Assembly (NCBI GenBank): GCA_051530055.1
Contig: CM121342.1
Span: 6,740,864 to 6,804,863, forward strand
Length of the DNA: 64,000 nucleotides
Source: Neoechinorhynchus agilis
Taxonomy: Eukaryota > Animalia > Acanthocephala
Direction: 5' to 3'
The position numbers and the translations under genes were made by a program. Below the pieces are notes generated by a model that was given only the letters and a program-made list of their open reading frames with translations, was not told the origin of the DNA and did not search any database. Shown in pieces: positions 5,931-47,974 of this stretch (its first letter is position 1; the number at the start of each line of letters is the position of its first letter).

Positions 5931-5931
5931 C

Positions 5932-19150: not shown

Positions 19151-19876
19151 TATTATAGCGTCTTCTAGTCATCGCTAAAGAACTGTTGCCAAACCAGATT
19201 TTAAAGTTGGTCTACTTTCCCATTTGTTTAAATGCTTTTCAATAATTTGTTCTTGCTCAAAAATCTTCGGGAAGTGGAATCTGTGCTTTGCCAACATGCA
19301 AAGATTGGCACTTCTGTTAGAATCATCTTATGAATTCCATGCGATTTGCTGCAAAATGGATCTCTCAATCTTTCCATTGGTTCATTTACCAGGAATCATC
19401 TATAAGAAATCTTCAAAATGAGTACGTTTTTGAATCGAAAATATACATTACTCCTCAACAGCAAATAAAATAATTAAACCAATGAAAGCAGAGTAAAGTA
19501 TACAAATGACAACATGGCGCAATATTCGGGCAGAGCCAATAAGCGGCTGCGTTTTGACTCAAACAAAGGCCATTACTGCCGAGTATTCTTATCCGAATAA
19601 ACAATACAGCCTTCGTTTAATTTTGTTGGGCAAAATTTAAGAGGTAATCTCTTTATTCGGATTACGATTCAGCTATTTTCTTAATTTGAATTTTTCGTTT
19701 GTTAACAACTCAGATTTCTATAACACGCCATAACTTGAAATAAAGTCAACCAATTTACTGTCTATTAAGTCTTTGAGTCCAATTTCAATAAAGAACGATT
19801 GATTTTTGTGTAAACAACGATCATCGCAATCAAACCAAAACAAAGAGTCTACTAATATATTAAACTAAATATCGTA

Positions 19877-21782
19877 TCAATCCTTCTCAGATTGTTTCTC
19901 GGAACGATCTTTCTCAGCCTGAACTTCTGCACTTATCCGCGCGGCAGATATTAACATTGAATTCAATGTAGGCGTCCAATTCATCGATGGAACATTCGAT
20001 GTCAGTTTATTGCTCTGCTGGATTAATTCGCTTTGGGCCGACGATAAATTTATTAATCTGCCGAGGGTTTGTAGTGTTTCTTCTAAGAAGGGCGAGGGTT
20101 TCAAAGGTTCAGTTGCACTTCGGTTTAAAGTGCTCGATTCTTGCATTCTGGTTCTCCGTGATTTTGTTCGTGGTTGTTGCTCAATTTGGTCTAACGGCAC
20201 TCCGCGCTTTAAAGATTTTTGCCCTTGCTTAATTGAAGAACATTTAAGATCTCCTGTTGGCGACACCGCTTTTTTAGTTTTAACGGCTGAACTTGTTTTT
20301 GAATCCAAAAAACCTTCGATAATCGCACAGGATTACAATAGTAAAGTTCATTTCGACGGTATCTGATTCGACTTACAACAACTTTGCATCGATTGCATTG
20401 ACGTTGGACTTTTGCTCGTTTCGCCCGCGTAGAACTTGTTTCCGGGTGCTTGCGTTTTGTCGGTTCAATGGTTCTTTTGCTGAACGCTTCATTGAAATTG
20501 TCTTCATTTTGGTCTTGACTTTGCTCGACAGCAATATTCGTTTGGTCTTTTGGAATACTGGCTTCTATGCATTTCTCACAAAGACAGAGTCCACAATAAT
20601 CAAACAATTTAGAAATTTCACTCATTCCACATTTAATGCAACATCGAATATCGCCAGTGTCTCCAGTCTTGTCTTCTAATTCCGGGTTCTGATTGGTTTG
20701 ACTGTTTAAGAGTAAGGTAATGTGACAATTTTATTGCTTCTTCTTTACATTCGAGTTCATCTTCTTGATTATTTTTATGTTGAATTTTACTCGCTTGCTT
20801 GTTTGAAGAAGTACATTCCTGACATGTGAAAGATCCTTTCGATGAATACAAAATTGAATTATCGTTTGAACCGCATTTGTTGCAACATTTGAAATTTTGT
20901 AGAATTTTTTTGTTCGATCCAGTGGACCGTTTGTTCGCTTTTACACCGAGATCGATATTGGAAACTGCGCAGATAGATTCTGTTTGTAGCTGAGATGTAT
21001 TTTCGTTCGGATTAACGGTACTCGCTTGAGAGCTACTCAAGATTCCTGTAAGCCGAGTTGCTGATTGCGGGGCACAACCTTTACACAGAATAAGTTGATA
21101 ACAGGAATACCATTCAGAACTTCTCCCTTTTCCACATCGTCGGCAACAAATATCTGAAGTATTCGCTGAACTATCCGAGAGATTGGGAACGCTTTTGACA
21201 CGAGGAGGTTGTAATGGAAGTTTCTGATTTTTATCTTCATTGCTTCCTTTTTTCGGCGATGTGAGAGTCAATTGTGCACATTTGCAACAAAGAACTATTT
21301 CTTTAGTATAAAACCAGGATACGCTCTTCTTGGTTCGGCAATTTTTACAGGACTTTCCATTTTTACTTTTGAGAAGTTTGACAGGATAAGATGCGGATTT
21401 CCTCTTTGCCGCCAAAGATTTATTTACCATCTCAAGACCAATTACACCCGCATTGTCATAATTTCCGATATCTTTGACAATAATCGCATCGATTTGACCA
21501 ACCAAAGAAGGCCACTTCGCAATCTTTGCAGATTGATCTTTTTCTATTTCGCTCATAGTTCGTTCGTTGGTTTCTTTAAGTTCAACGTCGAAAGCAATTC
21601 CTTACGAGATATTTCTACTTCTCGATCGTCTTTTGGTTCACTGCCATGGCCGTCAATAATTTTGATATCGGTAAGATCGATTTGTTCAGTTGTGGGTCTT
21701 TCTCGCTCTGCGTTCTCAAGCTTGTTGTCCACTTGAGCAAGAATTTCTTGAAGAACTTCAATAATTTCAGGATTCATTGTAT
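19877..21782 (-). pseudogene. Five-finger zinc protein gene, frameshifted copy with an internal ~76-codon deletion
   Basis: ORFs 21553..21927, 20633..21556, 20209..20625 and 19877..20308 tile the intact 49610..51829 protein. Confidence 0.85.
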
Positions 21783-22778
21783 AGTTTGCTGTTCTGAATA
21801 TTAACTTAATAGATATTTCCGTTGAGGATTGGAGAATTGTGAGATGCTCGTTGTAATGCTCGTTAGCAATTGTAAATGTATTGGATACGCTTTTATTCTT
21901 TTCGCCATAACCAAAATATACAAACAATTATTTATTTATCTTATTTATTGATGACTATTTGCTGTAATTTCGCGATTATTATAAAGCTTTACGAATCACT
22001 TGTTGATTATCACCGAAGCTCGCATTTGCGACAAATTATGTAAACCGTCGATCGTGTTTGCGGTTCGGTTCTTTTCGCGATCATCATTTGATTATCAATA
22101 AAACTTAAATCGACGACACTAGCCCAATAATGGTTTGATTGCATAGTTGAGAAAATTTTCGTACGTTCTTTTCATTTAAAAAACAATACTTAATTTCCAT
22201 TCATTGCATCCACATTAATTTTTTCATACGAGAACGCCACTTTACGAGCATTTTTATTCTGATTTTCTTGTCGACATTATCAACATCACGATTTAATAAA
22301 CAAACGAATTTTCTTCATCAGGTCTCTAGGTTTACAGTTTCATTAAGTACTTTGAAAAATTGTTAAAATGTATGAAAGTTCATGTGAGCCTATAAAAATA
22401 TATTATTATAACTAAATCAACTAAACTAAAAAATCATAAAAATAAATTGATTTAAAATCTTAAATGGGAATCAGATATCGTTACTTTTGCAAAGTGCATA
22501 TAAAAAATTAGGTAAAGAACTGTATCAAACACTAAAAAATTTGTTGTTCTTTTAAAGGAATTGTTATTTTTGAAAATTAATTGCAACTTAATGATAAAAA
22601 TGTGTCGCTACATTAAACAATAAAGATGGATTAATTTTTTGTCATTTTTAGCACTCTCCTTACATCTGTGAAAATATTCATGCATCGAAATTTAAAACTG
22701 TACTAATTTTTAGTTTCTTTATTTATAGACTGAACAAAAACTATCTGATTATTTGAACTAAAGCCGCTTTCGTGTTTT

Positions 22779-23915
22779 TCACGGGTTGTAAAAACTGGAC
22801 AATGTGCGTATTTTTGAACCGTCGAATTCCTTTTTAACGAATGGTTCATTCCGCAAAATTGATTTTGAAATGCTGTTGTGGGAATCATATAAGCATCAAT
22901 TGCCCAAATCGGGAATTCGCTTCCGTCAAACCTAACGTTCAAACATTGATCGGTTTGTGGTAATTCAGAATAATAAGATCCATTATAAGAAGAATTCGTT
23001 TGTTGTATACTTGGCGGATACTGACAGTCAGGATTTGATGGCACGTATCTTTGATCGAGTTGCGAAAACTCTCCGTAGCTGGAATAAGATCGGGAACTTT
23101 TAAAATCCTTGGCTCGTGCAGTATTTCGTTGACGTTTTTGTTTTCTTTGATCGAGCGTATCTTTGTCCTTGCATTTAAATTTACTATAACTTTCAATATT
23201 TAACTGCTCACGGCCAGACAATCTGCCAGAAAATCGGTCCAGTGAGGCGTATCTGTAATTCTCCGACTCCTGAATTTGATATCTTCGTTTTTGAGCCCTT
23301 CGCGCTGCTTTTGATTGGCTTTGTGTTGTTCCTTGAACTCAAAAGTAATGGAATTGCTAACTCAAACTTTTCCCGAATTTCATGCACTCGTGAACCAGAA
23401 AGTTGAACGAATTCATTACCGTGCAGCGTCATTTTAACATCCGAGTGTTTGAATTTTATTTCAGCCGTTCTACGTATTTCTGGCTCAAAGTCAACATATT
23501 CTATTGTCTCATTTATATTTGGGATCCTTTTTTCGTTAAAGTTCTCAACAACAGCTTCTAATTTTATACAAAAATCTAAATTTGTTTTCATTTGTACACA
23601 TGTGAGCGAGTAATCGTGAAGAGGACCCGATTTACATTGTGACATTTGAATTAGAGATTCTACATGATGAGCAAAGTCCTCAACATCACTTTCCGAACCC
23701 TTCTGTACATTAAGAATCACTTTGCCACTTGGAAATATACGAGCAGTTGCCCCGATGAGATTGCGTTCTTTATTGGTTATCGGCACTGTGTAGAGAATTG
23801 CGGGTCCACGTTGTATTTTTACGGACGGTATTGCACTTTTGATATCAACCAGGTTCAATTTGTTCATTTTAAATTTGGCACTGAAATTATAGACATGAAG
23901 GCCTTTGGTTGCCAT
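22779..23915 (-). pseudogene. TBP-family gene copy with two homopolymer indels (may be intact if these are sequencing errors)
   Basis: ORFs 23208..23915 and 22703..23221 tile the 378-aa protein. The shifts are at CCAATCAAAAG and CCAGTTTTTAC. Confidence 0.8.
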
Positions 23916-24705
23916 TTTGTTCTAAAAGTAATTTAAAAATCTATTAATTATATTTTATAGAATGTCGTGTTTTATTTTATAAGAAATAGGTATAAAAATT
24001 TGTTTCTTTAATAAATTCCATCTTTATATTGGCAAAGAATAATGTACCATTTAAAAAAGGATTGCTCTACAGAAATAGCTTCATCTATATCATCTAAGGA
24101 AAATTCGGAATACTTCTTGAAAATATATAAGATGAGAAAAACTTGCGCAAAAGGAGCTTAGCTTATCAAAAATACATTTTCGGCACACACATTATAATTA
24201 ATCGTTCTATGAAACCCCTAATTTTTTTTAATTGGTCAAATTTCTGAGATTTCAGCCAATAAGCGAATAAGAAACACGGTAAGAGGTAAGCATATTTTAG
24301 ACTCATAAATGTTTAATTGCGTAGTGTTTGTAACCAAAATAATTTTATATGGACTTTCGATCATGCGATTTTAGGCATAGTTCCTTTCTATAAATAATCT
24401 CGATCATAACTTTTTGCGGAATGAAAATTTTAGTGATTTGGTTCAAAAATGTGGAAAAAGTGTTTATTTGCGACAATACAAAAATCCGTGAATTTCCTGC
24501 ACACAAAAAACGTTCACAATATCAGATCAAAACTTTAAGAATTTCTTTACTTTCAAAGAATAAATTGAAGCCTTTTTTCAAAGGTTTTAACAATGTTTTC
24601 AACAAACAATTCACACGTTTAAGATATCCCAATTAAATAAATAAATTCGTGATTTCGCCTCATTGTGCGCAGTATTTTTTCGAGCTGTCGATGCATAAAA
24701 GGGTC

Positions 24706-25474
24706 TCAATAACAGAATACCTACAATTGCTAACGAGCGTTACTAAGAACTTCAAACCAATTCTCCGATCCTTCACGTAAATATCCATTAAGTCAATATT
24801 CAAAATGGTAAACGATGCAATAAATCCTGGGATTATTGAAGTTCTTTAATACATTCTCGCTCAAGTGGAAAACTAACTTTAGAATGCAGGGCGAGAAAGG
24901 CAAAAACTGAACTAATTGATCCAACAGAACCCATAATTTTTGATGGCAGCGACAGTGAATTGGTTGCAATCATTCTGAAATTGACGCTGTTGGCCAGCAA
25001 TATCTGTTTCGCCTTTTGGATTACTACTTTATATGCACTTCTTTCAAAGCCAAAGTCCGTAATAATCATACAATTCAGAAATTTATCTTATTCCACGTTT
25101 TATGCAACATCGACTGTGGCCGACGTTTCCAGTCCTGTCTTTTACTTCTGCGTTCTGCTTTTGTAATCTCTCCAACGGTAGCATTTTCATGAGATATTTC
25201 AGCGCCTTGATCCACTTTTGATTCACCGTCGCTGCCATCAATATTTATGGATCGGTTTGGTCAATTAGTTCACTTGTTATCCGTTCTCGCTCTGCATTCG
25301 AAAGTTAGTTGTCCACTTGAGCGAGAATGTATTAAAGAACTTCATTAATCTCAGAATTCATTGTATATTTTGCTTTTCTGAATACTCACTTGAATGATAT
25401 TTGCGTGAAAAATCGGAGAATTGTGAGATGTTCATAGTAATGCTCGTTAGCGATTGTAGGTATTCAGTTATTGA
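24706..25474. repeat. Zinc-finger-derived hairpin, copy 2 (arms ~24706-24960 and ~25221-25474)
   Basis: Reverse complement of 31353-32120. Confidence 0.85.
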
Positions 25475-25689
25475 TACGCCTTTTATGCTTTGTTGTGGAA
25501 CAACATCTCGCATTTGTTCTATACGCTCAACTTATATTATATTTTGCTGAAGTTCAGGCATTGATCTCACTGCATTTGTGCTATAGATTTTTATTCATAA
25601 ATTAAGTTAAAACGGTCTTATCATTTCAACATTACTCTATGCAGTGTTATAGGAGCCAAGCCTAACTGCAAAATCTTTATATTGTGCAG

Positions 25690-26690
25690 CCTACAAAGAG
25701 TATTCACTTAATGAAGTTCATTTTTACCTGACATTCTAGAAATCCCTTTGGCACAAATACGCGAAATCATAGTCATAAGATCATTTGCACCACCGCCCCT
25801 CTGGATCACTCAGCTGCCGTCCCGGTTTAACGGTCGAAAGGACGGATGCAGCGTTCCCTCGTTGCTTGGCAATTGCTTGACCAGGTCCTGCGCCGCGGTA
25901 CCAAACGATCCGAATGCCTCGACACCAGCAAAAGGAACAAAATAATGATTTCGACGCTGCTCCCCTTTCGGGTTTAATAGTGGCGCTTTTTATGTTGCTG
26001 TCTGCGAACGGCGTCCCAGAGAAGGCATTTGCCTCCCTTCCCCATAGGAATACTTTGACACCGTCCGGTCTACGGCTATCGAGTCGGCAAAGATTGCTCG
26101 GCTCCAGGATCAGGGGCACGACTCAGAATTGCGTTCATTTCGGCATGCGTGAGTACCTTCCGTCTGATTGCCGTCCGAGAGACCATGGCGTCCCCATGGC
26201 TCAACGGAGGATCCACAACGGCAGCGATTGGAGGTGCACATCGGTGCCCCAAGTCTCAGCGGGTCACTGCAATCCTTACTGTCTCGGCGGACGGTGAAGG
26301 GTACCAACAGAAGCGATTATGAGAGCGTTGAGACAAGTGTCCCGGTTCTCTTGTAGAGACTGCCGCCAATCGAGTTCGATTCACCAGGTCACGAGAATCT
26401 GAAATTAAAGAGTTATTAATTCTCGCTATCATGGGTGAGTCCCAAACTGATCGTTTGCAGCCATTGACGGGTACCTGCTCGCTGCCTAAATATCCACACC
26501 AAAGATTAAGCCTCCACGAAATCTTCATCCAAGGTGTAATTCTTGCCAAGAAAAGACTGAACTATTCTGCGGTTTGCTTCATACGATTCCAAATAAGCTG
26601 ACAGAGAAATATCGGCTGTATATCGGATAAATAAACCGCCGGACGACACAGAGCAAGGACGTTTGATGCCAGGCCTCGTCCGACAGCGAA
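25690..26690 (-). mobile_element. CRE subfamily B 3' fragment inside the cassette
   Basis: LEPSNLCRLDSRRPDG and QRGNAASVLSTV on the minus strand. Confidence 0.85.
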
Positions 26691-26826
26691 TATTGTTAAC
26701 AACAAAATCTCTGAAAGGCACCGAATTTCAATCCAGGACATTGAAATATAGCCACATTTTCTTGTTAATTTATTAGGCGAATACGTTTATTTCGCTCTAA
26801 TTACTCATTCTCATCCATTTGTACTT

Positions 26827-27394
26827 TTATAATTTTCTTCCCTTTCGTTTAAGTGGTCTTGCAATATTTCTTGTCTCTATCGACTCCACAACCGACGTCT
26901 TTATGATCTCAAAGAACTCGATTAGTGCCGTTTGATCACTTGTAGAATCGCAGTTCGGATCCAGGATCCTCGTGAACGCAGGAGAGAACAATAAGCGGAA
27001 ACGTTTTACATGAAGCGAATACTCGAGTTCCGAGATTCCCATTGCCTCGGCGCACTTCCTGAATAGCTGTGAAAGTGCAAGCCATTCGTTCTCAGTATCG
27101 TCAACGGATACTTCGTCCAAGGTTATCATATTTTTCGCGAGAACGCGGGGGGACAGAATACGTGAATTGATCTATAGTCTCAGAATTTAATAAATTTCGA
27201 ATGATACCTTGATTGCAAGCAATTAAAGATTCTTTTCTTAGAAGTCGTGCACCTTGGCTTTGTCGCAAAGTTATTGGCCAGGAATCACATGGAAGTTTGG
27301 CACGGAGGTAGAACAAAGCACGCGGGGAGAGTTTGCGCTGGGCAACTCGAAGGAACGATTGATCGGAGATGCACCGTAGGAAATTGTCGATGTT
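26827..27394 (-). pseudogene. Gene Y, 5'-truncated copy cut at 27394 by the start of the next cassette
   Basis: Matches gene Y from NIDNFLRC to the NLS, with a frameshift in a C6 run. Confidence 0.9.
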
Positions 27395-28151
27395 GAACAA
27401 CAATTCTATTGGCTAATCGAACAACCGGTACGTCAGAGAAATCGTTTTCTAATCTACTTCGATTCGCGAATATTCTGGAATTTTTAGTCTTTATCCATTA
27501 GCGTGACTTCATAATATTTTAGCGTTTATCATTTAAAACACCGAATAGTTTCATAGTACAACCAGGATTTTAGAACTTTTTTATTTACACCACTATTACG
27601 TAATTTATAGTCAACTAATTTAGATTTTTTTTAATCTTCGATTATTTTCGTCTTATTGTGGTGGCAATAGTTGTCACTGAACAAAATATCACCGGATGTT
27701 AACGTATACATTACTGTTATTGCAATCAACGGATATCGTCGAAAATAGATGGAATACGGACTCTAAAACTGCTCAAACTTAAATCTATCGATAAAACTAC
27801 GCCGTTATTAAAACATCACCGCTACAATCAATAATCTTGCAATCACTTCTCCTACAACCGATAATAAACATTGAATTTTAGCGTTACAAATCAATGTGTA
27901 TTTGATGTCCACCTTCATTCGGTCCAGCCCTGAAGATGCTGAATACTTTTGTGTCGTAAAATTAACTATTTTGATAACTGCTGAATAAGTGGAAAACGTT
28001 TCAGTAAATACTGGATTGCGTAAATAATATCACTGCAAACAATACGATCAAATTGATAATTTTTTATTCTTAGATAATTTTTATCGGTTTAATTATCATA
28101 TTTGAATGCTACTTCTTTATAGTTTCAACCATTTAGGCCTCATTTCAACAC

Positions 28152-28950
28152 ATGATGCAAGTTATCTATTCGAATAAATTATTCGCCGGGGCATGTCTCA
28201 CAAGCGGGTTTCATCGAATTTTCACAGCTCCGATTGTGAATATTTATCCATGGGTCGTTAAAAGGCCTCGTTACATCTCCGCATTAATTGATTTTGCAGA
28301 GAGATTAAATGCGGACGGTCTTCTTTCTGGAAAGGTAATTCAAATTTCACTTGCCAATAATTTGATCCTAACGAATACAGACTTTCTTTGCAAGTGCGCT
28401 CAAGGCTCCAATGCGTGTATCGGCTCTAGCAAACTCGTTGTGTCATCTAAATTGCAAAGGCAGAAATGAAGCCAATAGAGAAATGAAAAAATTGGTTGCA
28501 ATGTTTCGAGATAGGATAATCCGAGGACAGCAAGAAAGGCGAGAACGATCACTAATCACTGTTCAAGTATTTGGACAAAAACCTAGTAGTCATTTTATAA
28601 TAGAAGCTGTCGATTTGGAACATTGCATTGGAGGGGCGTGTATTCTAAGGAGCCCTAAACATAATCGAACGGTGGATAAGGATTTGCTTCTTATATCCGA
28701 AGCATCGGAATGCGTCGGCGATATGATTGCATCGTTTAATGATCAAGGTGATTGTCAAAGCTACAAGCAACTGGTTGTTGAAGGTGCCAAATTTTGTCGA
28801 GAACGTCATCCTCCAACGGTTGTTTCAAAGTCTCATCCGAAAGTCGACACATCACTGGATTATAAGTCGTGTTCATTGTGCTCGTTTAAGTTAAAGGAGG
28901 TGCCTCAAATCGTAAAATCTTTAAGAACGGGTGTTGTAGAATTTATATGA
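28152..28950 (+). CDS. Gene X, copy 2 (46-nt intron 28335-28380)
   Basis: Same two-exon structure as copy 1; the frame stays open after splicing. Confidence 0.68.
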
Positions 28951-29116
28951 ATTAAAATGGAAATAAAAAATTTTATTAGCAAAAATCTAATTATGAATTT
29001 ATAAAATCAGAGATCACCACACATATTGCGTACTTACAGTTAAAATTAATTTTTCTTTATTATAACATCATAATTCTAAAATCATTAAAAATCGAAAAGA
29101 TTCCCCGGCTTACCTA

Positions 29117-29993
29117 GTGACCTCGGTATATCACAATCCTTGCCAACAAAGCGATTTAGACATCGCAACCAATGCTCCTTTATGTTACATACCAACGAGT
29201 GTTCGTAAAACAATGAGTGATATTATTGAGTATGTTTGCCTCACTTCAGGATTCATAGAACTCGATCAAAAAACTATTGCACAAGAGCGTTCGAACGCTG
29301 TTGATGATCGAGCTGCAATTTCGATGGTCGTGAAAGCCAATTTTCACCCTAATGCTCAACTATCTCTGGAGGAACTCTACAAAGAGTGTCATACTGCTCG
29401 TTGTCTTTTGGGCGTCCTTGAAGTAAACATCGACAATTTCCTACGGTGCATCCCCGATCAATCGTTCCTTCGAGTTGCCCAGCGCAAACTCTCCCCGCGT
29501 GCTTTGTTCTACCTCCGTGCCAAACTTCCATGTGATTCCTGGCCAATAACTTTGCGACAAAGCCAAGGTGCACGACTTCTAAGAAAAGAATCTTTAATTG
29601 CTTGCAATCAAGGTATCATTCGAAATTTATTAAATTCTGAGACTATAGATCAATTCACGTATTCTGTCCCCCCGCGTTCTCGCGAAAAATATGATAACCT
29701 TGGACGAAGTATCCGTTGACGATACTGAGAACGAATGGCTTGCACTTTCACAGCTATTCAGGAAGTGCGCCGAGGCAATGGGAATCTCGGAACGCGAGTA
29801 TTCGCTTCATGTAAAACGTTTCCGCTTATTGTTCTCTCCTGCGTTCACGAGGATCCTGGATCCGAACTGCGATTCTACAAGTGATCAAACGGCACTAATC
29901 GAGTTCTTTGAGATCATAAAGACGTCGGTTGTGGAGTCGATAGAGACAAGAAATATTGCAAGACCACTTAAACGAAAGGGAAGAAAATTATAA
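29117..29993 (+). pseudogene. Gene Y, copy 2, +1 frameshift in a C-run (C6 vs C5)
   Basis: ORFs 29117..29719 and 29691..29993. Confidence 0.75.
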
Positions 29994-30129
29994 AAGTACA
30001 AATGGATGAGAATGAGTAATTAGAGCGAAATAAACGTATTCGCCTAATAAATTAACAAGAAAATGTGGCTATATTTCAATGTCCTGGATTGAATTCGGTG
30101 CCTTTCAGAGATTTTGTTGTTAACAATAT

Positions 30130-31117
30130 TCGCTGTCGGACGAGGCCTGGCATCAAACGTCCTTGCCTGTGTCGTCCGGCGGTTTATTTATCCGATATAC
30201 AGCCGATATTTCTCTGCCAGCTTATTTGGAATCGTATGAAGCAAACCGCAGAATAGTTCAGTCTTTTCTTGGCAAGAATTACACCTTGGATGAAGATTTC
30301 GTGGAGGCGCTTAATCTTTGGTGTGGATATTTAGGCAGCGAGCAGGTACCCGTCAATGGCTGCAAACGATCAGTTTGGGACTCACCCATGATAGCGAGAA
30401 TTAATCACTCTTTAATTTCAGTTTCTCGTGACCTGGTGAATCGAACTCGATTGGCGGCAGTCTCTACAAGAGAACCGGACACTTGTCTCAACGCTCTCAT
30501 AATCGCTTCTGTTGGTACTCTTCACCGTCCGCCGAGACAGTAAGGATTGCAGTGACCCGCTGAGACTTGGGGCACCGATGTGCACCTCCAATCGCTGCCG
30601 TTGTGGATCCTCCGTTGAGCCATGGGGACGCCATGGTCTCTCAGACGGCAATCAGACGGAAGGTACTTACGACATGCCGAAATGAACGCAATTCTGAGTC
30701 GTGCCCTGATCCTGGAGCCGAGCAATCTTTGCCGACTCGATAGCCGTAGACCGGACGGTGTCAAAGTATTCCTATGGGGAAGGGAGGCAAATGCCTTCTC
30801 TGGGACGCCGTTCGCAGACAGCAACATAAAAAGCGCCACTATTAAACCCGAAAGGGGAGCAGCGTCGAAATCATTATTTTGTTCCTTTTGGTGTCGAGGC
30901 ATTCGGATCGTTTGGTACCGCGGCGCAGGACCTGGTCAAGCAATTGCCAAGCAATTGCCAAGCAACGAGGGAACGCTGCATCCGTCCTTTCGACCGTTAA
31001 ACCGGGACGGCAGCCGAGTGATCCAGAGGGGCGGTGGTGCAAATGATCTTATGACTATGATTTCGCGTATTTGTGCCAAAGGGATTTCTAGAATGTCAGG
31101 TAAAAATGAACTTCATT
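30130..31117 (+). mobile_element. CRE subfamily B 3' fragment inside the cassette
   Basis: Matches 7600-8644 with deletions. Confidence 0.85.
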
Positions 31118-31352
31118 AAGTGAATACTCTTTGTAGGCTGCACAATATAAAGATTTTGCAGTTAGGCTTGGCTCCTATAACACTGCATAGAGTAATGTTG
31201 AAATGATAAGACCGTTTTAACTTAATTTATGAATAAAAATCTATAGCACAAATGCAGTGAGATCAATGTCTGAACTTCAGCAAAATATAATATAAGTTGA
31301 GCGTATAGAACAAATGCGAGATGTTGTTCCACAACAAAGCATAAAAGGCGTA

Positions 31353-32120
31353 TCAATAACTGAATACCTACAATCGCTAACGAGCATTACTATGAACATC
31401 TCACAATTCTCCGATTTTTCACGCAAATATCATTCAAGTGAGTATTCAGAAAAGCAAAATATACAATGAATTCTGAGATTAATGAAGTTCTTTAATACAT
31501 TCTCGCTCAAGTGGACAACTAACTTTCGAATGCAGAGCGAGAACGGATAACAAGTGAACTAATTGACCAAACCGATCCATAAATATTGATGGCAGCGACG
31601 GTGAATCAAAAGTGGATCAAGGCGCTGAAATATCTCATGAAAATGCTACCGTTGGAGAGATTACAAAAGCAAAACGCAGAAGTAAAAGACAGGACTGGAA
31701 ACGTCGGCCACAGTCGATGTTGCATAAAACGTGGAATAAGATAAATTTCTGAATTGTATGATTATTACGGACTTTGGCTTTGAAAGAAGTGCATATAAAG
31801 TAGTAATCCAAACGGCGAAACAGATATTGCTTGCCAACAGCGTCAATTTCAGAATGATTGCAACCAATTCACTGTCGCTGCCATCAAAAATTATGGGTTC
31901 TGTTGGATCAATTAGTTCAGTTTTGCCTTTCTCGCCCTGCATTCTAAAGTTAGTTTTCCACTTGAGCTAGAATGTATTAAAGAACTTCAATAATCCCAGG
32001 ATTTATTGCATCGTTTACCATTTTGAATATTGACTTAATGGATATTTACGTGAAGGATCGGAGAATTGGTTTGAAGTTCTTAGTAACGCTCGTTAGCAAT
32101 TGTAGGTATTCTGTTATTGA
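31353..32120. repeat. Zinc-finger-derived hairpin, copy 3 (arms ~31353-31606 and ~31867-32120)
   Basis: Same structure as 11909-12677. Confidence 0.85.
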
Positions 32121-32570
32121 GACCCTTTTATGCATCGACAGCTCGAAAAAATACTGCGCACAATGAGGCGAAATCACGAATTTATTTATTTATTTAATTG
32201 GGATATCTTAAACGTTTGAATGGTTTGTTGAAAACATTGTTAAAACCTTTGAAAAAAGGCTTCAATTTATTCTTTGAAAGTAAAGAAATTCTTAAAGTTT
32301 TGATCTGATATTGTGAACGTTTTTTGCGTGCAGGAAATTCACGGATTTTTGTATTGTCGCAAATAAACACTTTTTTCCACATTTTTGAACCAAATCACTA
32401 AAATTTTCATTCCGCAAAAAGTTATGATCGAGATTATTTATAGAAAGGAACTATGCCTAAAATCGCATGATCGAAAGTCCATATAAAATTATTTTGGTTA
32501 CAAACACTATGCAATTAAACATTTATGAGTCTAAAACATGCTTACCTCTTACCGTGTTTCTTATTCGCTT

Positions 32571-32875
32571 ATTGGCTGAAATCTCAGAAATTTGACCAAT
32601 TAAAAAAATTAGGGGTTTCATAGAACGATTAATTATAATGTGTGCCGAAAATGTATTTTTGATAAGCTAAGCTCCTTTTGCGCAAGTTTTTCTCATCTTA
32701 TATATTTTCAAGAAGTATTCCGAATTTTCCTTAGATGATATAGATGAAGCTATTTCTGTAGAGCAATCCTTTTTTAAATGGTACATTATTCTTTGCCAAT
32801 ATAAAGATGGAATTTATTAAAGAAACAAATTTTTATACCTATTTCTTATAAAATAAAACACGACATTCTATAAAA
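32571..32875 (+). promoter_or_regulatory. Putative promoter of the TBP-like gene: opposed CCAAT boxes (32571-75, 32596-600) and TATAAAA (32869-75)
   Basis: Motif match only, in AT-rich DNA; conserved in the other copies. The TSS is unknown. Confidence 0.3.
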
Positions 32876-32912
32876 TATAATTAATAGATTTTTAAATTAC
32901 TTTTAGAACAAA

Positions 32913-34049
32913 ATGGCAACCAAAGGCCTTCATGTCTATAATTTCAGTGCCAAATTTAAAATGAACAAATTGAACCTGGTTGATATCAAAAGTGCAATAC
33001 CGTCCGTAAAAATACAACGTGGACCCGCAATTCTCTACACAGTGCCGATAACCAATAAAGAACGCAATCTCATCGGGGCAACTGCTCGTATATTTCCAAG
33101 TGGCAAAGTGATTCTTAATGTACAGAAGGGTTCGGAAAGTGATGTTGAGGACTTTGCTCATCATGTAGAATATCTAATTCAAATGTCACAATGTAAATCG
33201 GGTCCTCTTCACGATTACTCGCTCACATGTGTACAAATGAAAACAAATTTAGATTTTTGTATAAAATTAGAAGCTGTTGTTGAGAACTTTAACGAAAAAA
33301 GGATCCCAAATATAAATGAGACAATAGAATATGTTGACTTTGAGCCAGAAATACGTAGAACGGCTGAAATAAAATTCAAACACTCGGATGTTAAAATGAC
33401 GCTGCACGGTAATGAATTCGTTCAACTTTCTGGTTCACGAGTGCATGAAATTCGGGAAAAGTTTGAGTTAGCAATTCCATTACTTTTGAGTTCAAGGAAC
33501 AACACAAAACCAATCAAAGCAGCGCGAAGGGCTCAAAAACGAAGATATCAAATTCAGGAGTCGGAGAATTACAGATACGCCTCACTGGACCGATTTTCTG
33601 GCAGATTGTCTGGCCGTGAGCAGTTAAATATTGAAAGTTATAGTAAATTTAAATGCAAGGACAAAGATACGCTCGATCAAAGAAAACAAAAATGTCAACG
33701 AAATACTGCACGATCCAAGGATTTTAAAAGTTTCCGATCTTATTCCAGCTACGGAGAGTTTTCGCAACTCGATCAAAGATACGTGCCATCAAATCCTGAC
33801 TGTCAGTATCCGCCAAGTATACAACAAACGAATTCTTCTTATAATGGATCTTATTATTCTGAATTACCACAAACCGATCAATGTTTGAACGTTAGGTTTG
33901 ACGGAAGCGAATTCCCGATTTGGGCAATTGATGCTTATATGATTCCCACAACAGCATTTCAAAATCAATTTTGCGGAATGAACCATTCGTTAAAAAGGAA
34001 TTCGACGGTTCAAAAATACGCACATTGTCCAGTTTTTTACAACCCGTGA
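32913..34049 (+). CDS. Divergent TBP-family (TBP-related factor) protein, 378 aa: N-terminal TBP core plus ~180 aa C-terminal extension
   Basis: ATARIFPSGKVIL aligns with TBP TALIFxSGKMV; CIKLEAVV...FEPEI with FPIRLEGLV...YEPEL; VQLSGSR..EIREKFELAIPLL with VVLTGAK..EIYEAFENIYPIL. Confidence 0.85.
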   Translation: MATKGLHVYNFSAKFKMNKLNLVDIKSAIPSVKIQRGPAILYTVPITNKERNLIGATARIFPSGKVILNVQKGSESDVEDFAHHVEYLIQMSQCKSGPLHDYSLTCVQMKTNLDFCIKLEAVVENFNEKRIPNINETIEYVDFEPEIRRTAEIKFKHSDVKMTLHGNEFVQLSGSRVHEIREKFELAIPLLLSSRNNTKPIKAARRAQKRRYQIQESENYRYASLDRFSGRLSGREQLNIESYSKFKCKDKDTLDQRKQKCQRNTARSKDFKSFRSYSSYGEFSQLDQRYVPSNPDCQYPPSIQQTNSSYNGSYYSELPQTDQCLNVRFDGSEFPIWAIDAYMIPTTAFQNQFCGMNHSLKRNSTVQKYAHCPVFYNP

Positions 34050-34479
34050 AAAACACGAAAGCGGCTTTAGTTCAAATAATCAGATAGTTTTTGTTCAGTC
34101 TATAAATAAAGAAACTAAAAATTAGTACAGTTTTAAATTTCGATGCATGAATATTTTTACAGATGTAAGGAGAGTGCTAAAAATGACAAAAAATTAATCA
34201 TTCTTTATTGTTTAATGTAGCGACACATTTTAATCATTAAGTTGCAATTAATTTTCAAAAATAACAATTCCTTTAAAAGAACAACAAATTTTTTAGTGTT
34301 TGATACAGTTCTTTACCTAATTTTTTATGTGCACTTTGCAAAAGTAACGATATCTGATTTCCATTTAAGATTTTAAATCAATTTATTTTTATGATTTTTT
34401 AGTTTAGTTGATTTAGTTATAATAAAATATTTTTATAGGCTCACATGAACTTTAGACATTTTAACAATCTTTCAATATT

Positions 34480-34989
34480 GCGTTCTTGCTAGCATCGAAG
34501 ATATTTCGATGAACATTGAAATCAATGTTCTTTAATTCAGCGTTTTCGATAGATGCGCATTCAACCATTTTTAACATACAAAGATGCTTCTGTTTGAGAT
34601 GTTCTGAATAATAAAGCTTAAAAGTTTAATTCCTCTACCTTATGAGAATTTCCGAGTTCTATAAGGATTGTACGGTACGCGTTTTAATCCAGGTCGTTTG
34701 ATGGATTCCTATTTTCGTTTTTCATGGGTGTTTCAGACAAAATCTTCAAACGGTGAAGTCGCATGTAAATTCCGGTATTGGAAACACTCACTTTTTCTAT
34801 TCGATGCTTTTCATGCTCGCATGGACCCTTACGAACGTCCTTAGTATTTGAAAGCCTTTTTATATCTTTTGAGATTTCGACAAAATCCATTTTGTTGAGA
34901 TTCGTTATTAAATTCTCATTTAGTTCCGAAATGCGAGGATTTGAATACTCATCCGTTCCTCTTTCGGACATCGACGACTTCCGAACCAC
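34480..34989 (-). pseudogene. Fragment of an unknown spliced gene truncated at the cassette right end
   Basis: ORF 34684..34989 plus a further open stretch (LYYSEHLKQKHLCMLKMVEC...NAILK) running up to the junction at ~34475. Confidence 0.35.
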
Positions 34990-35062
34990 AAAATCTTTTA
35001 TCTAAATTTTACAAGCTACCTATAATCGATGGAATAAAATCCGGATATCGTCACGGTTTAAT

Positions 35063-35272
35063 GATTGAAAAATACGATTGGGGAATTAATTGAGTTTTAC
35101 TTTAAAAATGATCACGTGCAGAAATATTTAGATCTAAATTTAATTGGAATTAAATGGTGGAAAGGGAAACCAAATGTGATAATTGTAAGATACTAATCAA
35201 AATAAAAAACAGCTTCTAGCATTAATTAGAAAAAATAGAAAGATTGCGAAAGGAAACGATGGAATGTTTTTT
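35063..35272. repeat. ~210 bp dispersed repeat, inverted copy at ~53935-54145
   Basis: Direct reverse-complement match by eye. Confidence 0.8.
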
Positions 35273-36281: not shown

Positions 36282-37930
36282 TTTCTCGCCCTCGGAGATT
36301 TCGGAACTCATCATACGGCAGTATTGGCTTTCTCCTTATTCTTGAACTCCGCCGGAGTAATCGTTCTTCATTTAATTCGTGTTCCGACTTATTTTCGCTT
36401 CTGTTTGCTTGGTCATTTGCCGTTCTAAAACTTTCTTCGCTCATGCTTCCTTCAACTTCGCTCGGTTCCCAGATCGATCCTCGTTTTGTTTCTTGCTGTG
36501 TGGTGTCTTCTACAACTTGTTGATCCCGCCCCACACTTCGTTCTTCATTATCCTGGAGTTTGTTATTTTGATCTTCACCATCCTTCAAATCTGCAGCTTC
36601 GTCTTCATTTCCTTCCGGATCTTCTTGTTTTCCTATTGCTCTTTTTCTTATGTGGTCGGCATGGATTCTCTTCTCACCCATATTTGTCTGCACCAGATAA
36701 GATAGTGACCCATTCTGCTTCCTTATAACTCTTCCTTTTTTACCGTGTCCCTGGCCCGTACCTTATCATCCATATTTTACTCTGTTAGTTTCGCACAATT
36801 CTTATCATGGAACTGCTATTGGAACGCTTGCTTTCTGCTGGATGTCTTGGTAGCACACGGTTTTATATTATCCCACAGGGACTTCATTCGTCTCTCGAAC
36901 ATCATCTCCGCTGGACATTTCTGCGTTATCGTATTTGGCGTTTTCCTGTACGACATCAGGAAGTTTTGAAGGCTGAGGTGTTCTGGTTTCGCCCTTCTTT
37001 TCTGGGTGGCCACAAACCTATCAACTAGGCCATTCGTCCTCGAATGGCATATCGAACTCTTACAATGTGTGATTCCATTTTCGTCACAAAATGTTTCGAA
37101 TTCATTTGATATGAATTGCGGCCCGTTATCGGATACGATTCGCTCCGGAATTCCGAATCTTGCGAATGCTTCTCGTTTGACCGTACGAGAAAATACAATC
37201 CATTCATCGGGCCTGCGAAATCTAGATGAATTCTTCTCCATGGTCCCGTGGGGATATCCCATGGGAACAATGGTTGTTCGAGAGATTGGATTTACTTATC
37301 CATCCTCGGTCACCAACAGTAATATCTGGCCAGGGCCATCATTCCTTTTTCTCCTGGATGTCCTTCATGTAGCTTTTGAAGACGGAATCACCATCCGATC
37401 CAGCCATAGTAGCACGTCGTTCTCCGTTGATAGCTCGTCCTTACGTTTTTTAAAATCGATATCTTCAGTTCTAGCTTTTCCAGGCCATCCCGATATCAGA
37501 TAACGCTTAATTCGAGCTAGTTGGGTATCTTTGATTCGCTTCTTAGATTTGACAGTGATAAATTGCAAGTTCCAAATCATGACTGCTTGGCATTCGAGAT
37601 AGGACTTCGGCATAACAGTTATTGACACCGGCTATGTGTTTGACTTCATAATCATATTCCGGTAGTTGAATCGCCCATCTTATTAGCCGAGAGTTCGCCA
37701 CCTTTCCTAAATTTCGCCAAAAATGTTTTCCAGAGGCTTGTGGTCCGTATATAATTGAAATTTTCGTCCAAACACAAAATCGTGGAATCGTTTCACACCA
37801 TATAACAGTGCCAGAGCTTCTTTTTCAATTTGCGAGAAATTCTTTTCCGCAGCCTTCAATAATTGGGACGCAAAAAATACTGGTTGATGATGGTTCGCAG
37901 CTTTTCGAGTGTCAAGTTCTTGTGCTAAAA
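36282..37930 (-). mobile_element. Gypsy (Mag/K02A2.6-like) RNase H-integrase remnant
   Basis: PVFFASQLL..AEKNFSQIEKEALA, YTDHKPL, GPWRRIHLDFAGP, FGIPERIVSDNGPQF and TNGLVDRFV, with frameshifts. Confidence 0.92.
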
Positions 37931-37934
37931 TGCC

Positions 37935-39180
37935 GAAATCTCCGCTCTCTTCCTACCCGGAAAAGAAAGAGTTCTTTGTTGCAAATGTGCACAATTGACT
38001 CTTACATCGCTGAAAAAAGGAAGCGATGAAGATAAAAATCAGAAACTTCCATTACAATCTCCTCGTGTCCAAAGCGTACCTAATCTCTCGGATAGTCCAG
38101 CGAATACTTCAGATATTTGTTGCCGACGATGTGGAAGAGGGAGAAGTTCTGAATGGTATTCCAGTTATCAACTTATTCTGTGTAAAGGATGTGCCCCGCA
38201 ATCAACAACTCGGCTTACAGGAATCTTGAGTAACTCTCAAGCGAGTAACGTTAATCCGAACGGAAATACATCTCAGCTACAAACAGAATCTTTCTGCGCA
38301 GTTTCCAATATCGATATGGGTGTAAAAGCGAACAAACGGTCCACTGCATCGAACAAAAAACATTCTACAATTTTCAAATGTTGCAACAAATGCGGTTCAA
38401 ACGATAGTTCAATTTGGTATTCATCGAAAGGATCTTTCATATGTCAGGAATGTACTTCTTCAAACGTGCAAGCCAGTAAGATTCAAGATCGAAATAATCA
38501 AGAAGATGAACTGGAATGTAAAGAAGCAGTAAAATTGTCACATTACCTTTCCTTAAACAGTCAAACCAATCAGAACCCAGAATTAGAAGGCAAGACTGGA
38601 GATACTGGCGATATTCGATGTTGCATTAAATGTGGAATGAGTGAAATTTCTAAATTGTACGATTATTGTGGACTCTGTCTTTGTGAGAAATGCATAAAAA
38701 CCAGTATTCCAAAAGACCAAACGAATATTGCCATCGAGCAACGTCAAAAACAGAATGAAGATAATTTCAACGAAGCGTTCAGCAAAAGAACCGTTGAACC
38801 TACAAAACGCAAGCACCCAGAAACAAGTTCTTCGCTTGCGAAACGAGCAAAAGTTCAACGTCAATGCAATCGATGCAAAGTCGTTGTAAGTCGAATCAGA
38901 TACCGTCGAAATGATCTTTACTATTGTAATTCCTGTGCGATTATCGAAGGCTTCTTGGATTCAAAAACAAATTCAGCCGTTGAAACTAAAAAAGCGGCGA
39001 TGCGAACAGGAGATCTCAAATGTTCTTCAATTAAGCAAGGGCAAAAATCTTTAAAGCGCGGAGTGCCGTTAGACCAAATTGAGCAATAACCACGAACAAA
39101 ATCACGGAGAACCAGAATGCAAGAATCGAGCACTTTAAACCGAAGTGCAACTGAACCTTTGAAACCCTCGCCCTTCTTGC
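37935..39180 (+). pseudogene. Five-finger zinc protein gene, 5'-truncated copy with a premature stop at 39087-39089
   Basis: ORF 37995..39089 matches fingers 2-5 of 49610..51829; CAA->TAA at ...IEQ*. Confidence 0.85.
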
Positions 39181-39770: not shown

Positions 39771-40114
39771 TTTCGAGACATTTCTATTCTATAAAAATTG
39801 GATCTTTAACGGTGTAAATTCTTGAGATAGAAGGTTTTATTGCATTCTTAGAGGGTAACGAAATTACTGAATTTTTAATCCGAATTTTTGCACGATTTTT
39901 GTTCATAAGAAATTCACGGATTTTATACTGCGGACATTTTACCTAATAACTCTGCTGAAAATTATTATTTGTGTGGGTTTTAGATTGACAGTCAAAAAAC
40001 CGTACGGAACCGTACTTTACCAAGACCGCACAAAAAAATATCTTTTTTATTGACCAAAGCCCTAATTTTTAGATTGCTAAAAGTCACTCAATTTGTGAAA
40101 GGTGGAAGTTAAAT

Positions 40115-42184
40115 TTGGATTTTTCTCCGCGCATCGGTGAAAAAAGTGATGTATTACTCAAACATTCATCCTTTCAGTATCTCACGCCTATTTTACTCGT
40201 GCAAATGTATAAATGTACACGAGTTATCTCGATTTTTCGTCGTCATTCAACCGCAATGCTCCTTGTGCTTCCCTTAAATATTCTATTATTAGTAATTCCA
40301 CTAAGTCTTGTTTCAATGGAACAAAATGGAAGAGAACCGAAATGCGCGATAACGCACTCCGATCCGATTTCAGCCTTTGGAATACGATGCTACGAAGATG
40401 ATTCTGTTGGGAGAATGGAATCGATTATTAATTTATTACGATCTGCTCAACGAAATCAAGAAAACTTTGAATTTAATAATGTCGATATTAAAGATATTCC
40501 GCAATATTTTGTTTTGTTATTTCCCCAAGTCGTAAAGGTAACTATCCTTCATGAATCGGAACAATCATACAGATCGTCAGTTCTGAGCAATTCTTTACTT
40601 TATAAACTCAAGCGTGTAAAAGAGTTGGATATTGAACGAGCTGGAATTGCTAAGATTCAAGAGGACGCTTTTAAAGAATTTAAGAGACTTGTTCGACTAA
40701 GTTTGAGTTTCAACAGCATATCAGTAATTCCGGCAAAATTCCCACGGCAATTACCGTTATTGAAGATACTCCGTTTATCAAACAATATGCTAACAAGTGA
40801 AAGTATAAATGTTATTTGCAGACTACGATACCTGAAACTATTGGATTTAAGTTATAATTTGATAGATCATTTAGGTTCGTCGCGCTCCGGCTATTTTTAC
40901 TATCTTAAGGAATTGTACATAGTTGGTAATCCAATTAAATCCGTAGACAAAATGGAATCGTTTAAAAATCTTCGTTATCTCCATATTACGTATCTTGCAA
41001 ATGTCAACGATTTATTGGGTGGTAAAGACCAATATTCCAGATTATATGAATTTATGGTCACAAATGGATCGGCTAAAGCGTTTGACACTAATTTGTTAGC
41101 TGCAGCACCTCGACTTGAAAATCTTGAGATTACGAGAAATCAATTAGAATCGATTCCTGCTGGAAACCAACAAACGAAGGAAAATATAAAGAAATTTTCG
41201 TTAGCGTATAATCAAGTAACATTCATCCACGAAAATGATTTCGACGACTGGACAAGTCTTATAGAACTCCATCTTCCGCACAATGGGATTAATGGCTTCC
41301 ATAGAAACGCATTTTCAAAGTTAAGGAGATTAAGAGAGATATTTCTTGATTATAATCAAGTAAAGACGATCAGCTCGGGCAGTTTAAGGAATAATCGTCT
41401 ACTGAAAATCTTCTCGATTAGTTACAACCAATTATATCATATTCATCACAATCTTTTTCGGAATACAGGGAACCTCCAATACGTCGATTTGTCTGGAAAT
41501 CGAATTCGAGATTTGATTGCAAGAAATTCTCCAACACATTTGATTGCATACGTCGCTTTATGGTTAAATAAAATATCCGCAGTAACCTTCAGCAGAACAA
41601 AAAGTTACAAGGCTCTCGCAAACTTCGGCCTTTATTCGGAATACGTCCCTCAGTCAATTTTGACCGCGTTGAAGATCTATGGTCAAAACGCTACGAGGGT
41701 TATATCGCTAACAAACAAAAATCTGACAACCTTCAGAGAAATAGACATATGGCTAACGATCAATATTTTAATTTCACTCGACTTGACTGATAACCAAATA
41801 ACTATGCTCGAACCAACCGATTTTTCGGGTCTAGTCAATCTTAAATATTTAAGTCTTCAATCAAATATCATCACCAAAATAAAATCAAAATCTTTTGAAG
41901 CGGCTAGCCATTTGGAAGCTATCGATCTCAGTCAAAACAACCTCAGTACAATTCCAGTTGATGCGTTCGATGGATTGGAAAATCTTATATTTTTTAATCT
42001 GGCTGATAACAAACTTAGAAGCATACCAGGAAGTCTTTATGATCTGAAAATGCCAAATCTCGTTTTCTTGAATGTTTCAAACAATCAAGTCCAATCCTTT
42101 AATATTGATCACTTCGCAATGATGAGATCACTGGGGCAGATAGTCGTCCAAGGAATGAAAATTGAAGCAATCTTTTATTACTGA
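40115..42184 (+). CDS. Intronless secreted-type leucine-rich repeat protein, paralog 1 (likely ATG 40256, ~640 aa)
   Basis: Many LxxLxLxxNxI/L repeats and a hydrophobic leader MLLVLPLNILLLVIPLSLVS. No TM or TIR domain seen. Confidence 0.9.
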   Translation: MDFSPRIGEKSDVLLKHSSFQYLTPILLVQMYKCTRVISIFRRHSTAMLLVLPLNILLLVIPLSLVSMEQNGREPKCAITHSDPISAFGIRCYEDDSVGRMESIINLLRSAQRNQENFEFNNVDIKDIPQYFVLLFPQVVKVTILHESEQSYRSSVLSNSLLYKLKRVKELDIERAGIAKIQEDAFKEFKRLVRLSLSFNSISVIPAKFPRQLPLLKILRLSNNMLTSESINVICRLRYLKLLDLSYNLIDHLGSSRSGYFYYLKELYIVGNPIKSVDKMESFKNLRYLHITYLANVNDLLGGKDQYSRLYEFMVTNGSAKAFDTNLLAAAPRLENLEITRNQLESIPAGNQQTKENIKKFSLAYNQVTFIHENDFDDWTSLIELHLPHNGINGFHRNAFSKLRRLREIFLDYNQVKTISSGSLRNNRLLKIFSISYNQLYHIHHNLFRNTGNLQYVDLSGNRIRDLIARNSPTHLIAYVALWLNKISAVTFSRTKSYKALANFGLYSEYVPQSILTALKIYGQNATRVISLTNKNLTTFREIDIWLTINILISLDLTDNQITMLEPTDFSGLVNLKYLSLQSNIITKIKSKSFEAASHLEAIDLSQNNLSTIPVDAFDGLENLIFFNLADNKLRSIPGSLYDLKMPNLVFLNVSNNQVQSFNIDHFAMMRSLGQIVVQGMKIEAIFYY

Positions 42185-47895: not shown

Positions 47896-47974
47896 ACTTA
47901 AAATAAATTCCGGATTTCGATTATTTGTGCCAAAAGGATTTTTGAATGCCAGACAAAAATTAACTTCATTGAAC

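Follow-up and report, generated by a model that had tools for sequence, protein, structure and literature searches.

A 5-kb inverted repeat in a duplicated region of the Neoechinorhynchus agilis genome

We analyzed a 64,000-nucleotide stretch of DNA (the window) from Neoechinorhynchus agilis (Acanthocephala; chromosome CM121342.1, approximately positions 6,740,864-6,804,863, assembly GCA_051530055.1), in which a sequence that we call X (27394-34475) occurs in several copies. An initial annotation of the window had read X as a multi-gene cassette with a fixed left terminus, and had proposed that a non-autonomous, cargo-carrying mobile unit or a fixed recombination hotspot is amplifying host-like genes at this site. 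N. agilis is an acanthocephalan fish parasite whose genome has been described as shaped by gene loss (PMC12690905). The window holds few open reading frames (ORFs); its long interspersed nuclear element (LINE) reverse-transcriptase ORFs and intronless leucine-rich repeat (LRR) genes fit an animal genome. Flanking and paralogous loci were retrieved via exact-protein matches. Two of these (L001 and L005) lie within the window, and two more (L002 and L007) lengthen it to a gap-free 92,689 bp without Ns. Of the others, L006 lies at 112-134 kb, L003 at 146-168 kb, and L004 is an older copy at 1.46 Mb, 5.3 Mb from the window and ~91% identical.

Comparison of the window with itself (self-BLAST) revealed that 22352-27394 is the reverse complement of 29426-34475, with 98.7% identity over 5063 columns. 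The two segments form an inverted repeat with arms of 5.04 kb and a spacer, X1, of 2,032 bp. Because the left arm mirrors 29426-34475, the proposed cassette consists of the spacer X1 plus the right arm, X2. Its left end at 27394 is the inner edge of a 5-kb inverted repeat, that is, the boundary between arm and spacer, and what had been described as an inverted gene Y is the inner end of the left arm.

The inverted repeat lies in the first of two colinear tandem units of ~29 kb (A, 19776-49508; B, 49509 to ~79300), each laid out as Z(-) ... X1X2 ... Z(+) ... L(+) (Table 1). L is an LRR gene. Z, a zinc-finger gene, encodes an orphan protein of 585-739 amino acids (aa) that has no Pfam match; its five CxxC-x17-18-CxxC motifs show GATA-like spacing. 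The units differ only in the interval from Z(-) to X1, which is ~5 kb long. Unit B has here an inverted part of a block that we call E (positions 2305 to 603), a minus-orientation LINE and a truncated LRR gene, L'; in unit A the interval is the left arm, which carries the same deletion of E as copy 3 of X. The Z-E-LINE part of unit B recurs in L006 at 98%, and the arrangement is therefore older than those copies. About seven copies of X are known, all on CM121342.1 and all but one within ~170 kb, and the flanking Z, E and LRR sequences are duplicated together with X, the distant copy included.

We consider it probable (roughly 0.65) that the region consists of segmental duplications, in an array that has been amplified locally and is rich in rearrangements, and that it is not a transposable element. 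Three findings bear directly on this: homology extends past the proposed unit into the flanking genes, the copies are clustered, and they share the same dead fragments. The claim that host-like genes are being amplified here is borne out.

Table 1. Features of the X-containing region, in window coordinates, and corresponding positions in units A and B
Feature	Coordinates	Strand	Content and context
X1	27394-29425	+	Spacer of the inverted repeat and opening 2 kb of the proposed cassette; ORF W and start of ORF Y; from self-comparison
X2 (right arm, copy 2)	29426-34475	+	Remainder of Y, LINE 3' fragment, Z-derived foldback, 378-aa ORF
Left arm	22352-27393	-	Reverse complement of X2; truncated Y, LINE fragment, Z foldback, frameshifted 378-aa ORF
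Copy 3 (X1+X2)	57157-64000, on to 64189 outside the window	+	Followed directly by gene Z(+), without block E
Copy 1 of X	1-12920	+	Interrupted by nested LINE insertions; ends at the equivalent of 32363
Block E, first 805 bp	34476-35269	+	Match to L004; left edge of E is the proposed right end
Block E, positions 603-2305	52457-54142	-	Adjoins Z(-) of unit B
Z(-), unit A	19776-22352	-	Homology between left arm and copy 3 continues through it
Z(-), unit B	49509-52385	-	Colinear with Z(-) of unit A, offset 29.7 kb
Partial Z(+), unit A	37962-39178	+	Colinear with Z(+) downstream of copy 3
LRR gene L(+), unit A	39996-42214	+	Colinear with L(+) downstream of copy 3
L'	55780-57156	+	First 1375 bp of an LRR gene unit, truncated where copy 3 begins
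Z(-), A and B	A 19776; B 49509		Offset 29.7 kb
X1X2, A and B	A 27394; B 57157		Offset 29.7 kb
Z(+), A and B	A 37962; B 65236		Offset 27.2 kb
L(+), A and B	A 40178; B 68740		Offset 28.6 kb

The right boundary of X coincides with the edge of a deletion

The right end of the cassette had been placed where two copies stop matching, at 34475 and 22353. Both positions are outer ends of the 5-kb inverted repeat, and homology runs on past each of them, into Z with copy 3 and into E with L004, so that they do not mark the terminus of a unit. Past ...AACAAT(C/T)TTTCAA, the outer flank of the left arm (in reverse complement) and the right flank of copy 3 (in L002) read alike for ~2.64 kb, across the whole of gene Z. 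The first ~480 bp of this stretch are identical; beyond them identity is roughly 97% by eye, with a 57-bp indel, and the alignment mean is 94% column identity, a figure that includes a non-homologous tail. At 34475 the right arm (copy 2) parts from the left arm and copy 3, and L004 stays with the right arm through this point, as far as 35269. Past that point L004 continues with sequence found inverted at 54142-52457, and ~2.67 kb on, the sequence upstream of Z resumes. The same Z-upstream sequence stands directly at the boundary in the left arm and in copy 3. Block E is accordingly the 2,667 bp between X and Z in L004 that are absent from the left arm and copy 3.

The position of E next to Z(-) at 52457-54142 shows that the ancestral order was X-E-Z. 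Since the 91% identical copy L004 has E, the simplest view is that the left arm and copy 3 lack it through a derived deletion; its two edges have CAA(AGT) microhomology in common. On these alignments, the proposed right terminus appears to be the left edge of an E deletion common to the left arm and copy 3. The ends described as TGAA...TTCA are a 4-base coincidence.

The remaining copies end elsewhere. In L003, X begins at the equivalent of 29293, where a 2-base GA overlap links it to Z-upstream sequence, and stops at 34333, joined to sequence equivalent to 37390. X begins at the equivalent of 33147 in L004. Its end corresponds to 33966 in an inverted copy within the extension (90771-92689) and to 32363 in copy 1. 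The right boundary thus takes the forms 34475 into E, 34475 into Z, 34333, 33966 and 32363. The initial annotation had itself named scattered ends in other copies as an observation that would speak against a fixed-ended unit, and that idea does not survive them.

X carries orphan ORFs and shared dead fragments

"Multi-gene cassette" overstates the content of X, in which we found three orphan ORFs (W, Y and one of 378 aa), part of a LINE and decayed sequence from gene Z. ORF W (28155-28950, +) has 249 aa and one putative 46-bp intron. Copy 3 lacks ~40 bp that copies 1 and 2 have (at 58382, equivalent to 28621-28660), and its W is shortened from 249 to 140 aa (ACOME3_006233). ORF Y has 291 aa and is intact in copy 1. 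The 378-aa ORF (32913-34049, +) is frameshifted in the left arm, leaving an ORF of 235 aa at 23208-23915. It occurs in at least five copies (32913-34049; 62626-63762; 23208-23915, -; L003 10001-11137; L004 10001-10627).

An exhaustive search of 1.84 billion representative proteins returned no relatives of Y other than its own family, and a word-indexed search returned none outside N. agilis for either Y or the 378-aa ORF, the only relatives of the latter being N. agilis "hypothetical proteins". W has no Pfam match and no other annotated copy in its cluster; it was not searched against the protein libraries. None of the three ORFs has a Pfam match above threshold. Residues 7-82 of the 378-aa ORF gave a sub-threshold Pfam match to TBP (E = 0.008; 16.4 bits versus a cut-off of 22.9), and a second TBP-repeat-like stretch can be made out by eye. 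Judged by this similarity, the ORF may encode a fast-evolving TBP-like factor. Sequence searches of the PDB with the ORFs gave chance-level matches only (best E = 0.19 and 1.5), and a single-sequence AlphaFold model of the 378-aa ORF was unusable (pLDDT 34).

The LINE fragment (approximately 30133-30970) corresponds to the C-terminal third of the ORF of a local LINE family and is a 5'-truncated insertion. Gene Z is the source of the 1,086-bp foldback at 31279-32363, in which decayed pieces of it are combined (residues 3-108, 457-533 and, inverted, 30-76); the foldback is also found at 11835-12920, 24467-25548 and 60990-62075. Its inverted arms measure 268 bp at 84% identity, and it represents an earlier inverted duplication of the type that formed the 5-kb arms. 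The left arm, copy 2, copy 3 and L003 all have both the LINE fragment and the Z foldback, in corresponding places. As these recent copies have the dead fragments in common and at matching internal sites, they arose by duplication of a DNA segment and not by independent insertions.

Copy 1, broken up by nested LINE insertions, is 98-99% identical to the other X copies in its segments 1-2516, 8489-8694 and 11835-12920. Its LINE fragment is only 88% identical to the others (7586-8414 vs 30125-30946), between flanks of 98-99%, and is part of a much longer LINE, which suggests conversion by, or exchange with, another LINE copy. Two other assignments for the left part of X were considered and rejected. 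W and Y have no similarity to the intact 996-aa LINE ORF in the window and so are not the 5' part of the local LINE family. X1 is not a repeat or short interspersed nuclear element, as its first 757 bp match the three X1 copies only and no Rfam match was obtained.

X lacks the hallmarks of a mobile element

The initial annotation had reported that no transposase, helicase, long terminal inverted repeat (TIR) or target-site duplication (TSD) was visible, and our search of the unit upheld this. The best local alignment of the first 300 bp with the reverse complement of the last 300 bp has a score of 18, whereas shuffled sequences average 21.7, and no direct repeat is common to the two flanks. 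The TIRs and TSDs of a DNA transposon or a transduplicating element (Pack-MULE, CACTA, hAT) are thus lacking. We found no terminal tandem repeat and no match to an Rfam family, and no transposase, Rep/helicase, recombinase or integrase is encoded inside the unit. Transduction or retrocopying by a LINE is not indicated, as neither boundary has an A-run or LINE tail, the LINE piece sits mid-unit, and the copies include other genes in both orientations as well as intergenic DNA.

Helitrons have neither TIRs nor TSDs and capture genes, so that a genuine non-autonomous, cargo-carrying element, Helitron-like or of some other type, with its left terminus at 27394, could in principle explain an identical left end that abuts two unrelated sequences and cuts two ORFs. 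We regard this as highly improbable. The plus strand starts TGAACAAC, with TG and not TC; the other strand ends ...AATTGTTGTTCA (...GTTGTTCA), not CTRR, and lacks the GC-rich hairpin that Helitrons have 10-20 bases before the 3' end; and the flanks, ...GATGT|T and ...CGATA|T, do not form the A/T insertion site of a Helitron. No right terminus is common to the copies. Beyond the unit, the missing 3' part of the cut LRR gene does not follow, and the next LRR gene downstream is complete. The ~7 copies lie on a single chromosome with co-duplicated flanks. Helitrons, Pack-MULEs and CACTA elements resemble X in the apparent carriage of host-like ORFs, and Helitrons also in the lack of TIRs and TSDs, but X has no defining termini, fixed right end, dispersed copies or autonomous partner. 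Taken together, the missing right terminus, the scattered ends, the restriction to one chromosome and the co-duplicated flanks speak against the proposed mobile unit.

The two left junctions share a single base

The part of the annotation concerning the left end fared better. TGAACAACAATTCTATTGG, a 19-mer, was found at 27394 and 57157 and nowhere else (0 occurrences expected by chance), and the copies starting at these positions match for 6.8 kb to the end of the window at ~98.6-98.7%, and on to 64189 in the extension. Both truncations were seen as described. The left neighbor of 27394 is the inverted, truncated ORF Y (27101-27403, -; Y residues 101-185); that of 57157 is an LRR ORF (55933-57159) cut at about codon 398 of 659, the stop codon of which, TGA, is the first three bases of the cassette. 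In the junction alignment the shared sequence begins TGAACAAC at both sites and the sequences to the left are unrelated (...GTCGATGT in copy 2 vs ...GACGATA in copy 3), so the use of one and the same cassette base by two junctions is supported. At the junction of copy 2, the T at 27394 can be assigned to either partner, limiting microhomology to at most 1 base. X1, and hence the left terminus, is present in three copies only (1, 2 and 3), to which L006 adds a 215-bp scrap of X1; the left end of copy 1 falls ~171 bp before the start of the window.

L', the LRR segment at the junction of copy 3, is 8-9% diverged from every other LRR copy compared (DNA identity ~90-92%). Its best annotated protein outside the window is 86% identical in amino acids, barring the 177-aa ACOME3_006240, which falls in its cluster at ≥90%. 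Apart from that protein, no near-identical donor of L' was found among the annotated proteins.

One way to account for the shared base is a site-specific break or recombination hotspot at 27394, where two independent repairs joined different DNA to the same end. Candidate causes would be a replication-fork barrier, the footprint of an excising element, or cleavage at the base of an inverted-repeat stem-loop. Two different left neighbors do meet X1 at the same base, with an overlap of at most 1 base each; 27394 is exactly the arm/spacer boundary; and the stretch from Z(-) to X is rearranged differently in unit A, unit B and L003. In addition, CGAT lies 1-2 bases before the junction in both flanks (27385-27393 and 57148-57156; GTCGATGT|TGAAC and GACGATA|TGAAC), which by our estimate has a chance of ~7% and is probably a coincidence. 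Against a hotspot, there are two junctions only, and the site shows no structure likely to stall forks or draw a nuclease: no hairpin, short inverted homology or tandem repeat was found there. Studies of inverted-repeat fragility in yeast indicate that a long (2 kb) spacer makes hairpin extrusion inefficient, and the spacer here has that length. Independent events are also unnecessary, because the copies are positional homologues in tandem units. We therefore judge a hotspot unlikely. Very unlikely, in our estimation, is the stronger form in which 27394 would be a site-specific DNA end. Such an end would be remade time and again, through nuclease cleavage, excision of an element or a programmed break, and ligated to any DNA at hand. 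If that were true, 27394 would serve as a fixed docking end, and a lineage-specific cluster (LRR, multi-zinc-finger and possibly TBP-like genes) would be amplified from it.

In the segmental-duplication reading that we favor, the copies sharing the boundary hold equivalent places in units A and B, and the boundary at 27394 and 57157 is therefore positional. It was probably inherited in common, with the segment to its left replaced in one of the units. The annotation had named derivation of one junction from the other by a secondary rearrangement as an outcome that would overturn its proposal; as positional homologues in colinear tandem units, they come close to it.

A proposed origin of the left arm as a recent inverted patch

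We compared the arms and copy 3 site by site. Copies 2 and 3 differ by 1.0%, but the left arm shows a substitution divergence of only 0.54% to copy 3 and 0.58% to the right arm. Just 2 substitutions are private to the left arm (15-20 for the other copies). At five sites, all in columns 3221-3942, the left arm groups with copy 2, and elsewhere with copy 3. Few private substitutions, together with a copy-2-like block in a copy-3-like arm, indicate that the left arm was likely copied or converted recently. Inverted arms, a unique spacer and block-wise sharing of variants are all present, as in a palindrome undergoing gene conversion. A simple tree of the X copies was rejected, because the site patterns are mosaic. 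Immediately to the left of the left arm, 21563-22333 is 88.7% identical to Z(-) of unit B, yet identical to the Z(+) flank of copy 3.

These observations are consistent with the following sequence of events. An ancestral unit would have had the order X (W, Y, LINE scrap, old Z scrap, 378-aa ORF) - E - Z - L, and would have been duplicated as DNA, dead transposon fragments included, in both orientations. The left arm would be a young inverted patch of ~5.5 kb, templated on the X2-to-Z part of a copy-3-like unit. A broken end may have invaded homologous Z sequence in inverted orientation and copied ~5.5 kb, after which the new strand would have been joined to the other end with 1-base microhomology at 27393/27394. 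On the opposite side the patch would blend into the resident Z by homology, and the result would be a 5-kb inverted repeat with a 2-kb spacer. The joints of the left arm appear to carry the signature of break repair in which homology-primed synthesis precedes end joining. Events of this type clearly took place earlier in the region, as seen in the LRR(+)/LRR(-) pair, the arms of the Z scrap, and the Z(-)...Z(+) arrangement around X in L003.

For the shared left base, the explanation that we prefer is that 27394 marks an older duplication boundary, where the homology among X1 paralogues stops. Homology-guided repair would clip non-homologous tails at that boundary, so that the same base could be used again.

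Several points weigh against this account. Exact reuse of 27394 by two left neighbors is more than ordinary duplication alone would give, since a random second break would fall there about 1 time in several thousand, and the trimming of tails at the boundary is something that we infer. The ancestral left context would show in the flank of copy 1, which lies outside the window. Short inverted homology, which a simple fold-back predicts, was not found at the spacer boundaries. The relationships among copies are reticulate, and any order of events is tentative. Finally, the assembly is a draft from pooled animals, so that some of the copies could be haplotypes and some of the junctions chimeric.

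Haplotypes and assembly artefacts

The last point was considered separately. The assembly is a MaSuRCA/Flye hybrid of Illumina and ~4.2 Gb of Oxford Nanopore (ONT) R9.4 reads from ~50 pooled worms, with very little HiFi data, and was treated with purge_dups and then scaffolded with Hi-C; it is a draft (PMC12690905). The copies differ by 0.5-1.4%, which we judged compatible with allelic divergence and which is possibly allelic, and units A and B might be structural haplotypes placed in tandem. Pooled haplotypes could have been placed in tandem or inverted orientation, with one or both of the junctions at 27394 and 57157 chimeric. Other features of the region speak against a pure artefact. The 92.7 kb contain no Ns; the copies differ by many indels, LINE insertions and flanks and are not simple allelic pairs; and adjacencies recur at 98-99.9% (47144-49641 and Z-E-LINE in L006, 44300-45474 in L007). 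The 0-1-base overlap at the junctions is unlike the mis-joins of a k-mer graph, and the 0.6% difference between the arms and the asymmetric 2-kb spacer are unlike fold-back chimeric reads. We consider an artefact quite unlikely.

Comparison with known inverted duplications

Ampliconic palindromes of mammalian sex chromosomes have arms of tens to hundreds of kilobases with identity above 99.9%. The structure described here shares with them multi-kilobase inverted arms of high identity, a unique spacer and signs of exchange between arms, as well as lineage-specific multi-copy families and the reuse of breakpoints at duplicon boundaries. Older palindromes are also nested here (LRR, 93%; Z scrap, 268-bp arms, 84%). 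It differs in having 5-kb arms of 98.7-99.4% identity, and in being known from an acanthocephalan draft assembly.

Fold-back inverted duplications have a single-copy spacer, at the boundary of which short inverted sequences are expected (Hermetz et al. 2014; PMC3907307). Like these, the locus has an inverted and a direct copy, a kilobase-size spacer of normal copy number and a novel junction of low homology. Unlike them, it shows no inverted homology at the spacer: the best inverted match between the first 40 spacer bases and the ±40 bases around 29426 scores 5, against a shuffle mean of 5.5 (compare PMC3907307). Moreover, the left arm resembles copy 3, with which it shares the E deletion, at least as closely as its partner arm, so that a simple fold-back from the neighboring arm is probably not its origin. 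Both findings weakened simple fold-back from the adjacent arm as a candidate.

The direct-inverted-direct order of copy 1 (+), left arm (-) and copy 2 (+), with a microhomology joint, would also suit duplication-inverted triplication-duplication (DUP-TRP/INV-DUP) structures and origin-dependent inverted-repeat amplification. The second junction expected of DUP-TRP/INV-DUP would fall in 12920-19776, a stretch overwritten by LINE insertions at 13475-19035. The origin-dependent model differs in that we found no evidence here of an origin or of short flanking inverted repeats.

What looked like a fixed-end cassette without TIRs or TSDs is thus the inner part of a palindrome, and its second end is the boundary of an indel; this becomes visible only through the flanks and an older paralogue. 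In this region orphan and LRR genes form a cluster that has been rearranged more than once and recently; clusters of this type are candidates for fast-evolving functions and are hard to assemble.

Neighboring genes and repeats

Copies of gene Z lie in both orientations across the array (49610-51829, -; 19877-21777, -; 37890-39089, +; L002 11772-13981; L003 3793-6001 and 11922-13421). An uninterrupted LINE ORF at 13475-16465 (+) encodes 996 aa with an RVT_1 domain and a Cys/His-rich C-terminal region, and from its intact frame the element is possibly still active. Related LINE fragments lie at 2601-4946 (-), 6413-8429 (+), 8703-11100 (+), 16840-19035 (-) and 54132-55691 (-), and no single-exon genes are annotated between 13208 and 19877. 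A fragment of an rve integrase core (36816-37262, -; E = 2e-9) belongs to the transposon-rich filler between E and the partial Z(+), outside the proposed cassette.

The LRR family has at least 14 annotated N. agilis paralogues with 69-86% amino acid identity on at least 3 chromosomes, and a dense cluster of LRR genes is found at locus tags ACOME3_006237-006268. Two full LRR genes in the window form a second palindrome (39996-42214, +, and 45464-47500, -) with 93% identity and a 3.25-kb spacer. Finally, 44300-45474 and 88250-89424 of the extension (L007 3266-4440) are 99.9% identical over 1.2 kb at a distance of 44 kb, more than the neighboring blocks, which indicates very recent conversion, duplication or an effect of assembly.

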